Shown in pieces: positions 39,825 through 63,232 of a stretch of 64,000 nucleotides of DNA. The position numbers and the translations under genes are program-made. The stretch is from the IMG/VR virus record IMGVR_UViG_3300044646_001937, positions 62,001-126,000 of that record; one strand, given 5' to 3'. Within the stretch, counting starts at the first letter, position 1; each line of letters starts with the position of its first letter. The notes beneath the pieces are model-generated. The model saw nothing but the letters and a program-made list of their open reading frames with translations. It had not been told where the DNA came from and did no database searches.

Positions 39825-40517
39825 ATGCCTAGTTCTAAACAAGAAAAAATAACTAAACTTAAGGAATATTTTAGGAACATGCGTTTGGACGCATCTGTGA
39901 TGGGAAGGACTCTAGGAAGCTCATCTTCATATGTTTCGCCTCAAATAATGCTAGATACCACCAAGAAGCTGCTGGATGTGTTTGGTAGAAAGGTTGAACC
40001 TGATGATCGTGATAACGTCATCTTTTCCAAGTTTATGGGGCCTGAAGATCATATTAGAGAACATATTGAGCATGATGCAGGTAAGATTCAATTTAAAGCA
40101 AAGTCTAAGCTAAGACAAAAAAGAAACCTGTCATGGTTGCATGCAGGCTTCTTTTCTCCTCAGGTAAAATCTGTTTTTGTAGGTAACTCATTAAGTCAAA
40201 ATATTGAGGGTGTAAATCCGATGGAGCAGTATATGCTTGCACATAAAGTTACCAAAATGGGTGAGGGCGGTATCGGTTCTACTGAGGCTATTCCAGAATC
40301 TTCTAGAGAGGTAAATGAGTCTCAGTTTGGTTTACTTGACCCTATTCAAACAGTAGAGGCAACGACCATCGGGGTAGTAAATTTTTTCGTACATAATACC
40401 AGAAAAGGTACTGATGGAAAACTTTACAGACAGGTAATTGATAATGCTACTGGCAAGCCTGTATGGATTGATCATCATGAGTTTCTTTCTTCGGTTATAG
40501 ATATTCCTGAGCATTAG
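39825..40517 (+). CDS. RNA polymerase beta subunit, middle fragment (rifampicin region, fork loop)
   Basis: NPMEQYMLAHKVTKMGEGG ~ NPLSEITHKRRISALGPGG; REVNESQFGLLDPIQTVEATTIG ~ [23 protein letters not shown]. Confidence 0.85.
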   Translation: MPSSKQEKITKLKEYFRNMRLDASVMGRTLGSSSSYVSPQIMLDTTKKLLDVFGRKVEPDDRDNVIFSKFMGPEDHIREHIEHDAGKIQFKAKSKLRQKRNLSWLHAGFFSPQVKSVFVGNSLSQNIEGVNPMEQYMLAHKVTKMGEGGIGSTEAIPESSREVNESQFGLLDPIQTVEATTIGVVNFFVHNTRKGTDGKLYRQVIDNATGKPVWIDHHEFLSSVIDIPEH

Positions 40518-41023
40518 TCTTTTGTTACTGGTCCCCACTTGCCTACAGGACATTTTTCTGTGGCTAGGTGCAGCTTTGCTGAAGTGCATCCGCATTGCTT
40601 GCATTTACCCATACCCATGTTTCCATCTTTATCCCAGAATGGGCAGCTATCGCAAATACTTTTTCGAAGCTCGTAAACTTCTTTAGTTGCTATAGGCATT
40701 CCGTTAGACACCCAATTTTTCATAGACCCTGCAAAGTTTTTAATTGGGCGCAGCACTGAATTGTCCACCTCAGTATCAGGAGTATCAGGTGAAGCTTCTT
40801 CTACTACTTGCAGCGTATTGCCCGCAGCTTTCTCACTATCTTTTTGCTTGTATTTAGCTACAATCATGTCTGCTTTTTTTCTAGATACAATGAAGACGTC
40901 ATCAAGCCAAACACCTTCAGCTTGTATCTCTTCTGCAAAGTCTGGTGCATGCAATTTATGCCTCTCCATAAGTTCTCTAGGGACATGCACGAAAGATTGC
41001 GCTATTTTTTGTTCAGGATGCAT
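40514..41023 (-). CDS. protein with C-terminal Cys cluster
   Basis: CDSCPF...CKQCGC...KCPVGKW. Confidence 0.65.
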   Translation of the reverse strand: MHPEQKIAQSFVHVPRELMERHKLHAPDFAEEIQAEGVWLDDVFIVSRKKADMIVAKYKQKDSEKAAGNTLQVVEEASPDTPDTEVDNSVLRPIKNFAGSMKNWVSNGMPIATKEVYELRKSICDSCPFWDKDGNMGMGKCKQCGCTSAKLHLATEKCPVGKWGPVTKD

Positions 41024-41027
41024 ATGA

Positions 41028-60961: not shown

Positions 60962-60971
60962 TTTTCAAGAT

Positions 60972-61382
60972 ATGCCAGACTACTCTAAACTAGCGGCCTT
61001 CTTAAATTCTTTTGATGTCCTTGACCCAGGATATGACGCAGTCTCTTTTATTAAAGAGAAGATTGCCCAGGATCTACAGGATGCAAACACAATTAACAAT
61101 GGCGATGAAGAAGATCTTCAAGATAACGACATCACCATGTCTACACCAGAACAGCAGGATAACGAGAACGTTGAAGGCAAGGAGATGGAAGGGGCCTTTA
61201 AAGAACTTGAGGCGTTAAATCAGATAGATGAGGAGAAGAAGGAAGTCATTAAGCCCAAAGAGCAGTCCACCTATTCTGCAATGCAAACAGATTTTCCGTC
61301 TGTTTCGGTGCTTGGCAATCATCCCAATATCAACAAGCAAGCTTCGTTATTTACATTGTTGCAGAAAAAACTTAAAGCATAA
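60972..61382 (+). CDS. acidic K-x-A protein
   Basis: 136 aa; EKIAQ, NKQAS; TAATG overlap with beta'-C. Confidence 0.65.
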   Translation: MPDYSKLAAFLNSFDVLDPGYDAVSFIKEKIAQDLQDANTINNGDEEDLQDNDITMSTPEQQDNENVEGKEMEGAFKELEALNQIDEEKKEVIKPKEQSTYSAMQTDFPSVSVLGNHPNINKQASLFTLLQKKLKA

Positions 61383-63232
61383 TGGCTGTAACTACCACAG
61401 GACAGGTATTGTTGAAGTTCTTCCTACCTCAACAATTTCATAATCTAGTTCAGGATGTCATTTTAGATAAAAAGGGCATCTCTAAGCTTTTTGCAGAATT
61501 AGCGGAAAAGGCTCCTGAAGAATATAGTAAAATTGTATCAGATCTTACTAGATTAGGTTTCGAGATTGCTACAAGACAAGGTACGTCTATTACTTTAAAA
61601 GATCTAATCTCTCCCATCAATAAAGATAAAGAGTGGGATGAGTTTGAAAAATTTAAAGAAGAAACAGAAAAGTCAAACGACTCAAAAAGCATTAAAGACA
61701 ATAAGATCTTTAATAAATACAACGACATGATGTCTAGTATTGAAAAAGATCTATTGAATAAGGGTCTTGCTGATAATAAGTCATTGGCTAAGATTATCAT
61801 GGCAGGATCCCGAGGTTCTCCAGCACAATACAGAGGAACAATTGCAACACAGGGAATCGTAGTGGATGCAGAGGGTAAGCCTAAAATGGATCTACCTATT
61901 AAAAGTTCTTATGCTGAAGGCTTATCTTTACCAGAATATTTAGCTACTTCGTTTGGTACTAGGTCTGGGGAAGTGTTAAAAAAGATTAGTGTGGCGCAGG
62001 GCGGGTATGGCTCCAAGCAATTTGCAAGAGCGCTAATGCCTCTACAGGTAGTAGAGGCAGACTGCGAAACAATGAACGGTATCAGTGTTTCTGTAGACGA
62101 CAAAGAATCAGCAGGGTCCTATCTAGCCAAAGGAGTGTTAGACTATAATAGGAATAACGAAGTGACATTAAAAATGCTCAACGATCTTAGAAATAAGAAA
62201 GTTGAGAAGATTGTTATTCGTACACCCATGACATGTCAGTCTAACAAAAAACATCACTCAGGTGGTTTGTGTCAGATGTGTGTAGGTAAAAGAGAAAAGG
62301 GAATGGCAGCAATGGACAGCTATGTAGGTCTGGTGGCAGGTACGGCTGTAGCGGAACCATTAACAGAAAGCGCGATGAAGGCCAGACATTCAGGAGGCGC
62401 AGCCACGTCACTAGGAGGACAATCAGGCTTTAAGCTAATCAATCAGCTGGCCAACGTACCTAAGACATTTGTAGGCAGAGCCCCCCTAGCTCAAGAGGAC
62501 GGATTTGTTACTAAAGTAGAGAAAGCTGACGCTGGAGGTTACTTTATAACCGTGAATAATGAAGAGCATTATATTGGGATTGATCAGGAACCTAAAGTAC
62601 AGCAAGGAGACAGAGTAGAACAGGGACAGGTATTAAGTACAGGTCTTGTAGATCCTAGAGAGGTTGTAAAATATAGAGGAATTGGAGACGGGCGTAAGTA
62701 TTATATGGAGGCAATGAAGAAAGCATTCGACGACAGCAGTCTTCCTGTAAATCGCAGAAATTTTGAGCTGATTGCGAAAGCTGCTGTAGATCATGTCAAA
62801 ATCACAGACCCCGAAGGTATAGGTAATTATCTTCCAGATCAGGTGGTGTCATACTCAGCTATTGAGAAAGACTATAACCCCAGAAGTAACTCTAAGATGC
62901 TTAGGATAGATATGGCCTATGGTAAATATATGGAGAAACCTGAGCTTCACTACACCATTGGCACCAGAGTTACCTCCGCCGTAATCAGAGATCTCAAAGA
63001 ACATGAGATTGAATCTGTACTGGTTAACGATCAACCCCCCAACTTTGAACCAGTAATGGTACGTCTGGTGGACGTACCAGAGCATCATGAAGACTGGATG
63101 CATGTATTAAACAGCACCAACCTCGCAAAAAGGTTTGTAAATATGGTCAACAGAGGATCTACATCAGACACAAAAGGCCCTAGCCCTATACCTGGGTTAG
63201 CTATGGGTGTTGGGTTTGGACAGAAAGATTAA
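61382..63232 (+). CDS. RNA polymerase beta' subunit, C-terminal fragment
   Basis: TTGQ, GSRGS, PIKSSYAEGL, bridge helix GTRSG...GGY, Zn site C..TC..CQMC, trigger loop EPLTESAMKARHSGG. Confidence 0.92.
   Translation: MAVTTTGQVLLKFFLPQQFHNLVQDVILDKKGISKLFAELAEKAPEEYSKIVSDLTRLGFEIATRQGTSITLKDLISPINKDKEWDEFEKFKEETEKSNDSKSIKDNKIFNKYNDMMSSIEKDLLNKGLADNKSLAKIIMAGSRGSPAQYRGTIATQGIVVDAEGKPKMDLPIKSSYAEGLSLPEYLATSFGTRSGEVLKKISVAQGGYGSKQFARALMPLQVVEADCETMNGISVSVDDKESAGSYLAKGVLDYNRNNEVTLKMLNDLRNKKVEKIVIRTPMTCQSNKKHHSGGLCQMCVGKREKGMAAMDSYVGLVAGTAVAEPLTESAMKARHSGGAATSLGGQSGFKLINQLANVPKTFVGRAPLAQEDGFVTKVEKADAGGYFITVNNEEHYIGIDQEPKVQQGDRVEQGQVLSTGLVDPREVVKYRGIGDGRKYYMEAMKKAFDDSSLPVNRRNFELIAKAAVDHVKITDPEGIGNYLPDQVVSYSAIEKDYNPRSNSKMLRIDMAYGKYMEKPELHYTIGTRVTSAVIRDLKEHEIESVLVNDQPPNFEPVMVRLVDVPEHHEDWMHVLNSTNLAKRFVNMVNRGSTSDTKGPSPIPGLAMGVGFGQKD

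Follow-up and report, generated by a model that had tools for sequence, protein, structure and literature searches.

Among described systems, the closest to the RNA polymerase (RNAP) considered here are the two-gene enzymes of Salmonella phage Arash, gp206 (1525 amino acids, aa) with gp216 (606 aa), and of Vibrio phage D69, VPHD69_0261 (1527 aa) with 0264 (609 aa). In the proteome of purified Arash virions gp206 ranks first by detection, with gp216 and gp10 abundant as well, and gp218 is represented by 1149 spectra; the same paper labels gp206 simply 'beta' (PMC10585845). Here we analyze a 64,000-nt stretch of viral DNA, referred to as the window, which comprises positions 62,001-126,000 of the 204,454-bp contig IMGVR_UViG_3300044646_001937 (JGI Ga0453731_0000015) and contains four open reading frames (ORFs) related to these proteins: beta-N, beta-mid, a beta-C/beta'-N fusion and beta'-C. 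Identity between the window and the Arash-type proteins is 27-31% along all four pieces. Both have the junction between the C-terminal end of beta and the N-terminal end of beta', the loss of a zinc ribbon, the cut in beta', a gp218-like gene after beta'-C and a gp10-like sigma factor. They differ in that the Arash type carries whole beta on the fused chain, whereas in the window beta is spread over three genes, 23 kb and both strands. We consider it likely that the four ORFs make up the full catalytic core of one phage-encoded multisubunit RNAP of bacterial type, a member of the Arash-type family in which beta has been cut twice and dispersed.

Partition of beta and beta' over four genes

Judged by alignment to the E. 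coli subunits, the four ORFs tile bacterial beta and beta' consecutively, without gaps or overlaps. beta-N (47692-48348, minus strand, 218 aa) corresponds to approximately RpoB 1-240, which comprises beta1/protrusion and a reduced beta2/lobe. With phmmer its aa 61-128 align to RpoB 88-157, and it matches the N-terminal residues 60-225 of bacterial beta chains in the PDB (E 1e-4; for example S. aureus beta 64-225). It also matches aa 36-222 of Arash gp206 (BLASTP E 2e-20), while no Pfam family was hit. Its AlphaFold model (AF2) has a predicted local distance difference test score (pLDDT) of 80, and the top Foldseek matches of this model are only bacterial RNAP beta (E 2e-10 upward, prob 1.0), including an M. 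tuberculosis beta1-beta2 construct. beta-mid (39825-40517, plus strand, 230 aa) covers approximately RpoB 385-620, the second half of beta1 together with the fork/rifampicin-pocket region: aa 20-207 align to RpoB 404-597 (phmmer E 4e-13), Pfam assigns Rpb2_3 (E 4e-6), and Arash gp206 is matched at aa 232-469 (E 2e-25).

The fusion (56825-59830, plus strand, 1001 aa) continues with approximately RpoB 627-1338, that is the flap, the beta double-psi barrel and the beta C-terminus, followed by approximately RpoC 18-550 with the N-terminus, the clamp helices and the double-psi barrel of beta'. In phmmer alignments aa 37-539 correspond to RpoB 663-1338 (RpoB being 1342 aa long) and aa 618-967 to RpoC 169-514. 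Pfam finds Rpb2_6 (aa 102-464, E 1.7e-46), Rpb1_1 (aa 667-732) and Rpb1_2 (aa 868-935), PDB matches include both beta and beta'/gamma chains, and Arash gp206 aligns over aa 483-1517 with 31% identity (E 5e-151). Finally, beta'-C (61382-63232, plus strand, 616 aa) spans approximately RpoC 570 to the end, with the bridge helix, the second Zn site, the trigger loop and the C-terminal module; aa 4-495 align to RpoC 572-1286 (572-955 and 1196-1286), Pfam assigns Rpb1_3, Rpb1_4 and Rpb1_5, and Arash gp216 is matched over aa 5-599 (E 1e-68). The E. coli stretches left out of this tiling are E. coli lineage-specific insertions.

Aligning the window with Arash gp206, D69 0261 and the E. coli subunit ends places the fusion junction at ~58400-58460 (plus strand; fusion aa ~525-546). 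The join is head to tail with hardly any linker: the last beta residues before it align to E. coli ...LGINIELEDE-1342, and the N-terminal segment of beta' starts within ~5 residues of them. The ~32-residue zinc ribbon of beta' (E. coli Cys70/72/85/88), due ~40 residues after the junction, is deleted in the window, Arash and D69 alike, and the only Cys of the 1001-aa fusion is at position 264. The catalytic elements, on the other hand, are retained. The beta barrel motif GDKLNMPFGAKG (57797-57832, plus strand) is the counterpart of E. coli GDKMAGRHGNKG in the phmmer alignment to RpoB 1047-1130, and both catalytic-site lysines, Lys327 and Lys335 (GDK...AKG), are present at the places of E. coli K1065 and K1073. 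The Mg-binding motif DSDGD (Asp913, Asp915 and Asp917; 59561-59575, plus strand) corresponds to E. coli NADFDGD in the alignment to RpoC 368-467, so that the three-Asp Mg site of the beta' double-psi barrel is complete in the fusion. In beta'-C the bridge helix and trigger loop align to RpoC 777-955 and the trigger-loop His is kept (MKARHSGGAA as compared with MRTFHIGGAA in E. coli).

All four ORFs are intact in the ORF listing at coordinates given beforehand in a preliminary description of the window, and they span 23.4 kb on both strands. That description had claimed consecutive, non-overlapping parts of beta and beta' with unrelated genes between them; the ORF listing, Pfam and the phmmer tiling of RpoB/RpoC bear this out, the separating genes being tail-fibre-like or of unannotated function. 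Its further claims also hold: beta is in three pieces (beta-N, beta-mid and the beta-C portion of the fusion), beta-C is fused in frame to beta'-N at a junction that it had put near 58410-58450, and the lysines and aspartates listed above place both double-psi barrels on one chain.

Relatives, family architectures and phylogeny

The fusion is found in eight IMG/VR contigs at 78-81% identity and with the same neighbours, and beta-N is found in seven relatives at 72-77% identity. A stand-alone beta-mid occurs in 23 viral contigs with the common order dCMP deaminase (minus), beta-mid (plus), variable tail-fibre-like genes and beta-N (minus). More than 130 protein clusters contain a stand-alone beta-mid, nearly all of ~230 aa and at 53-100% identity. 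Across relatives the RNAP pieces keep 72-87% identity while the intervening genes mostly show 24-60% or are replaced. The scattered layout, seen in at least 23 independent viral contigs, is a conserved gene arrangement and no accident. Genes resembling tail fibres and containing collagen repeats lie at 2955-12570 (plus), 13837-15279, 41028-42827 (minus) and 46328-46828 (minus); those between beta-mid and beta-N form the most variable part of the locus (24-45% identity or replaced) and look like a host-range cassette wedged amid conserved RNAP genes.

A collection of 50,697 phage records contained no close cultured relative, a megablast query of 24.5 kb finding no match in it. The best protein matches in these records were Arash gp206 and its counterparts in Vibrio phages D69, D181 and D148 (98% coverage, 30% identity), isolates in which a ~1525-aa protein consists of whole beta plus beta'-N and a ~606-aa protein of beta'-C. 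Relative to the window, Arash has ~75 extra residues in the N-terminal region of beta'. When the window was compared with the 43-kb RNAP regions of Arash and D69, only the RNAP pieces and the gp218-like gene matched, and the gp10-like sigma, encoded outside the window, is the only further gene found in common with Arash. The gp218-like gene encodes 736 aa and starts in the window directly after beta'-C (63310-64000, plus strand); both its ends are homologous to Arash gp218 and D69_0266, virion 'structural proteins' (E 2e-11 and 8e-10 in the full-length comparison).

To define the wider family, we scanned 1.84 billion representative proteins (50% identity) exhaustively with HMMER, obtaining 7992 matches, 1400 of them at E<1e-30. 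All of the best 150 of the 7992 matches span beta-C and beta'-N, and since every one of these representatives carries the junction we regard it as the hallmark of the family. The four window pieces were then mapped onto the 150. Whole beta plus beta'-N was seen in 115 and a start at beta-C, like that of the window, in 23; eight start within or at beta-mid, and a last group of seven comprises P0248, in which both subunits are whole, and six that are unclear or whose N-terminal extensions are unassigned. The window is a minority sub-architecture of its family. Every family member has the beta-N and beta-mid segments, either fused or encoded nearby.

In a tree built from ~995 shared columns, the window clade has 100% support, a long stem and 11 representatives, all of which start at beta-C. 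This clade lies inside a larger one (52 members, 100% support; also seen in an IQ-TREE subset) that consists mainly of whole-beta members and includes Arash and D69. Since beta is contiguous in bacteria, the outgroup state, fission is most plausibly the derived condition. The fusion is shared by the whole family, and only the further division of beta into three sets the clade of the window apart. A second clade of 6-7 representatives likewise starts at beta-C. In one of its contigs (L030) an 806-aa gene consists of beta-N, a 345-aa insert and beta-mid, and the gene for beta-C/beta'-N starts just before that gene has ended; this arrangement is a colinear intermediate, cut at the same beta-mid/beta-C site. 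An approximately unbiased (AU) test against uniting the two clades gave p 1.7e-6 on a quick LG+G4 tree, with the group chosen after the tree had been seen, and this rejection suggests that the same beta-mid/beta-C site was cut at least twice. At the other extreme, P0248 (2565 aa) has whole beta and beta' on a single chain (Rpb2_3, Rpb2_6, Rpb1_1, Rpb1_2 and Rpb1_5), with an intein after DxDGD. The family covers one-, two-, three- and four-gene partitions.

The first beta cut falls within the reduced beta2 lobe or directly behind it. The second follows the fork/Rif region at approximately RpoB 620-627, between Pfam Rpb2_3 and Rpb2_6. The E. coli insertion SI1 sits at the position of the beta-N/beta-mid boundary. 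Relatives carry inserts of 150-520 aa at that boundary, the one of P0159 being a 2H phosphoesterase domain. The family is also an intein hot spot (P0130, P0136, P0159, P0248 and ~100 others), while the window genes are intein-free. The inserts, up to four per protein, are 350-500 aa long with LAGLIDADG, Intein_splicing or Hom_end domains. They recur at positions ~130-147, 185, 329, 368, 457-470, 598, 779-785 and 918 (right after DSDGD) in the numbering of the window fusion, and at ~125, 160 and 179 in beta-mid.

Sigma-like genes, rival explanations and genomic setting

Genome-wide tests used 195.8 of 204.5 kb (96%; positions 4,444-200,227 of 204,454 bp), obtained by a genome walk in which every overlap was verified. 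They covered 701 ORFs of at least 50 aa. A single set of RNAP genes was found. Neither RpoA nor RpoZ of E. coli was matched by any of the 701 ORFs in phmmer (E<=0.1), and no called gene of the contig is on record with an alpha or omega Pfam family. As the preliminary description had stated for the window, no sigma, alpha or omega was seen among the window ORFs tested; tblastn likewise found no match in the window to the Arash gp196 sigma, the D69 sigma or the Arash portal and helicase. Elsewhere in the genome, where it had advised looking for sigma- or alpha-like partners, two sigma-like genes were found outside the window; alpha and omega were not found in the 96% covered. One candidate of 210 aa (contig 155,747-156,379) contains Pfam Sigma70_r3 (30 bits, above cut-off) and a C-terminal helix-turn-helix; it is 31% identical to Arash gp10 (E 5e-17) and is matched by E. 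coli RpoD (E 1e-6). The other, of 194 aa (contig 33,629-34,213), resembles extracytoplasmic function (ECF) sigma factors (Pfam Sigma70_r4_2, 27.7 bits, above cut-off) and sits among genes for RNA ligase, DNA ligase, PNKP and RecA, a DNA-metabolism set of early type. A sigma-seeded search for further loci was dropped because four phage sigmas proved too divergent on alignment (14-20% identity).

In most family members whole beta sits on the fused chain and the enzyme has two genes; we propose that in the window clade beta was later cut twice and that rearrangement scattered the pieces. beta-N, beta-mid and beta'-C would assemble non-covalently around the fused chain, whose covalent beta-beta' tether may stand in for the alpha-dimer assembly platform. 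Promoter recognition would go through the phage sigma-70-type factors, i.e. the 210-aa gp10 homologue and the 194-aa ECF-like protein. If Arash is a guide, virions probably carry the enzyme and inject it for early transcription; as no other RNAP was found in the genome, later phases are probably served by it as well. A broader version of this proposal would make the whole family an alpha-less, sigma-dependent RNAP in which the tether replaced alpha2 and thereby freed beta for repeated independent cuts at the same tolerant sites on the surface, the virion carrying a holoenzyme with its own sigma. We offer it tentatively, as an idea that may well prove wrong. If true, it would represent a third mode of phage transcriptional autonomy beside the single-subunit enzymes of T7/N4 and the sigma-less split enzymes of the phiKZ type, and a natural experiment on RNAP modularity.

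Several points weigh against a complete four-piece enzyme of the kind that we favour. The window clade is known from sequences alone, and its packaging in virions is argued from a relative at ~30% identity. The missing zinc ribbon and reduced beta2 lobe mean that initiation and termination may differ from the bacterial model. Divergent alpha or omega analogues would escape phmmer and Pfam, and 8.7 kb of the genome were unrecovered; moreover, the sigma-like proteins may have the host core as their partner just as well as the phage enzyme. The plus-strand operon also contains four small conserved ORFs, described below, that the proposal does not account for. Lastly, beta-mid on its own models poorly (AF2, pLDDT 58), so that the model lends no support and was not taken into the fold search, though poor order is what one would expect if the folding of this segment depends on the complex.

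The same core might also operate without being packaged, host RNAP (maybe redirected by the ECF-like factor) transcribing the early genes and the phage RNAP only the middle and late ones. The position of the ECF-like sigma gene, typical of early regions, would fit such a division of labour, as would the many phages whose sigma factors act on the host core (PMC7598289), and the virion content of the clade is known only by analogy. However, the RNAP genes lie in or beside blocks of large, unannotated and probably structural genes, with the homologue of the virion protein gp218 directly after beta'-C and the gp10-like sigma in the same downstream block, and in Arash the counterparts of the fusion, of beta'-C and of the gp10-like sigma rank with the most abundant proteins of the virion. 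We therefore think a non-packaged enzyme unlikely, though worth keeping in mind.

Other explanations would change the composition of the enzyme itself. That the active form is only the fusion plus beta'-C, with beta-N and/or beta-mid as relics or repurposed proteins, might be suggested by the distance of both genes from the other two, the solitary position of beta-mid on its strand and its poorly ordered lone AF2 model. Yet few genes around them are as well conserved (72-87% identity, compared with 24-60% for most of their neighbours), both are full-length in all relatives (~230 aa in >130 clusters), beta-mid retains the fork/Rif-pocket motif block lining the active-site cleft, and no family member is without the two segments, all of which makes this very improbable. 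Even less credit can be given to split inteins that would rejoin the pieces into an Arash-like chain by protein trans-splicing. The family is indeed rich in LAGLIDADG inteins, including in window-clade members P0130 and P0136, but beta-N aligns up to aa 215 of 218, beta-mid over aa 4-229 of 230 and the fusion from aa 12, leaving the termini no spare residues and hence no room for intein halves; the recurrent intein sites, moreover, lie inside conserved motifs (e.g. after DSDGD), away from both beta cut sites. The source being a metagenomic contig, a chimeric assembly or frameshifts breaking one gene could be invoked as well. Frameshifts are ruled out by the position of the pieces on different strands and 7-16 kb apart, while the identical contig is also present in independent JGI, Logan and ENA assemblies and the layout is repeated in 23 other contigs from different samples, so that an artefact is hardly credible. 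A full four-gene core of the Arash-type family thus remains the reading that we prefer.

beta-N is gene nine of a minus-strand operon beginning at 56327, the fusion and beta'-C share a plus-strand operon, and beta-mid, ~16 kb from this divergent-operon region, is a lone plus-strand gene amid minus-strand genes and adjoins the dCMP deaminase gene. By ORF layout and JGI gene calls, the divergent operons are separated by an intergenic region of ~190 bp (56328-56516), which may be a candidate for a shared control region of both; reading its sequence established no promoter motif. A scan for promoters and terminators around beta-mid gave no excess over shuffled sequence, and the regions upstream of beta-mid and of the fusion operon showed no common motif by eye. 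The plus-strand operon opens with a conserved 101-aa ORF (56517-56822, plus strand; a JGI call, 65-76% identity in relatives) whose stop is 3 nt before the fusion start and which matches no Pfam or PHROG family. Three more small conserved ORFs, of 66, 296 and 136 aa, lie between the fusion and beta'-C (59874-61382, plus strand), again with no family matches in Pfam or PHROG. Conservation of the 296-aa ORF is limited to its C-terminal ~90 aa. The 136-aa ORF (60972-61382, plus strand) is conserved, strongly acidic and of low complexity, its stop overlaps the beta'-C start codon, and its product might associate with RNAP or mimic DNA. In the minus-strand operon region, the gene at 52565-55045 (minus) reads as 826 aa when the longest ORF is taken and then overlaps its neighbour (54705-56327, minus) by 340 nt; JGI sets a start downstream (683 aa, 52565-54616) and a Logan assembly gives 826 aa, so that the true start is uncertain.

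The rest of the window includes a polysaccharide-modifying cluster (18140-28928, plus strand) with a pyruvyl transferase, a GT2 and two GT1-family glycosyltransferases and a methyltransferase, as well as a MoxR/AAA_5 ATPase gene at 22983-24101. PhoH (32076-32852), cobalamin adenosyltransferase (35887-36459), ribonucleotide reductase (37177-39027) and dCMP deaminase (39139-39585) genes follow, and the neighbouring B12-activating enzyme suggests that the reductase belongs to class II and depends on adenosylcobalamin. Outside the window, an ERCC3/Rad25-like superfamily 2 (SF2) helicase is encoded at L032:6825-8282 (contig ~11.3-12.7 kb). Such helicases co-occur with RNAP subunits in jumbo phages of the phiKZ type (Iyer et al. 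2021), and the present genome, with its unrelated RNAP lineage, shows that pairing too. Upstream of RecA, a Prok-JAB gene adjoins a ThiF/E1-like gene in a ubiquitin-like conjugation module (L029:8967-9999, contig ~23.0-24.0 kb). Three consecutive giant genes (2237, 1773 and 3616 aa; L031:10001-26714 and L033, contig ~164-187 kb), the first two with weak fn3/Ig-like matches, probably encode virion fibres or decoration proteins.

Comparison with known RNA polymerases

Like the phiKZ/AR9 enzymes, the RNAP of the window is built only of beta/beta' fragments, with no alpha or omega found, and has beta' cut after the double-psi barrel at approximately the cyanobacterial site (PMC7598289). The piece with the beta barrel also starts similarly, its lysines being 386/394 in phiKZ gp71-73 (PMC8287921) and 327/335 in the window. 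However, phiKZ/AR9 phages (Chimalliviridae with vRNAP and nvRNAP; AR9/PBS2) have two RNAP sets and the window genome has one; their fragments are on separate chains with no beta-beta' fusion, whereas the 1001-aa chain crosses that boundary; and they use gp68 or gp226 and no sigma homologue, whereas the window genome encodes Sigma70_r3 and Sigma70_r4_2 proteins. Matches to phiKZ-type PHROG families are weak (E 1e-6 to 1e-18, as against 1e-33 to 1e-38 for phrog_24349 and phrog_25354). On these grounds we rejected a phiKZ/AR9-type identity.

Cellular enzymes resemble the locus at single points. Helicobacter and Wolbachia have natural fusions of whole beta to whole beta', and E. coli RNAP has been engineered with a tether between the two; all share the head-to-tail join with the window. 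In chains of the Helicobacter/Wolbachia type both subunits are entire, and alpha2 and omega are their partners. The window chain covers only RpoB ~627-1338 and RpoC ~18-550, and a whole beta-beta' fusion was therefore rejected as its identity; such fusions nevertheless precede it in having two double-psi barrels on one chain. In cyanobacteria and plastids, beta' is split into RpoC1 (gamma) and RpoC2 within ~10-30 residues of the window's cut, and beta'-C aa 24 is aligned with residue 11 of cyanobacterial RpoC2. The archaeal B''/B' split presumably falls in the same Rpb2_3-Rpb2_6 interval as the beta-mid/beta-C cut. Cellular split enzymes keep beta separate from beta', have alpha and omega homologues and are encoded in one operon, and the window differs in all three respects.

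Among phage enzymes, the mReC RNAPs (Weinheimer & Aylward 2020), as in Rhizobium phage RHph_TM30 and Cobetia phage Carin-5, can likewise be aligned to bacterial beta and beta', and in Carin-5 a sigma gene adjoins the RNAP genes. The mReC isolates have separate full-length beta and beta', unlike the window, and match it with ~25% identity over short stretches only (72-73 bits, compared with 162-206 bits for bacterial rpoB/rpoC). The mReC filter called for two proteins of at least 800 aa plus an NADxDGD motif (PMC7481178); membership was rejected, as the motif in the window is GGDSDGD and neither beta nor beta' is a protein of its own there. The mReC supplement does not mention a fusion and contains, from the metagenome of one relative (3300009158), only unrelated contigs (capsid-protein references) and nothing from two other samples. 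YonO and the virion RNAP of crAss-like phages also have both double-psi barrels on one polypeptide, so that this feature, part of the arrangement that the preliminary description had not recognised, is not new in itself; these enzymes are minimal and barely alignable to beta/beta' (PMC7481178), whereas the window pieces tile nearly all of both. The 'Moraphages' (PMC12619734) contain no RNAP and were rejected as a description of the lineage.

What is new here is the partition, together with a family that had gone unrecognised; the enzyme itself is of a known kind. The preliminary description had called the arrangement one not recognised from characterised enzymes. The fusion turned out to be family-wide and present in Arash gp206, D69, D181 and D148, but the wording remains fair, since we found no biochemical characterisation or published description of the architecture, including in the jumbo-phage RNAP review (2020), Iyer et al. 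(2021) and a 2026 review; nor did we find the family, with its 1400 representatives at E<1e-30, discussed in reviews up to 2026. The cuts fall where relatives carry large inserts. The family's three cut positions also seem to match the sites at which the E. coli enzyme reportedly tolerates splitting, and together this suggests that the family maps the modular joints of the enzyme. Severinov and colleagues reportedly described in J Biol Chem in 1996 that E. coli RNAP assembles with beta split at two places, dispensable region I and the archaeal site, and with beta' split at the chloroplast site, and are said to have shown there in 1997 that tethered beta-beta' is functional.

Cellular RNAPs, to our knowledge, always keep beta and beta' as two assembly units held by alpha2. 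The family redraws these borders: one chain crosses from beta to beta' and holds both barrels, the outer parts are separate, and no alpha was found. Unlike the phiKZ/AR9 enzymes, it seemingly retains sigma-70-type factors, which would make it a tractable bridge between bacterial and jumbo-phage transcription, with cultured models at hand in Arash, grown on Salmonella Typhimurium, and in the Vibrio phages.

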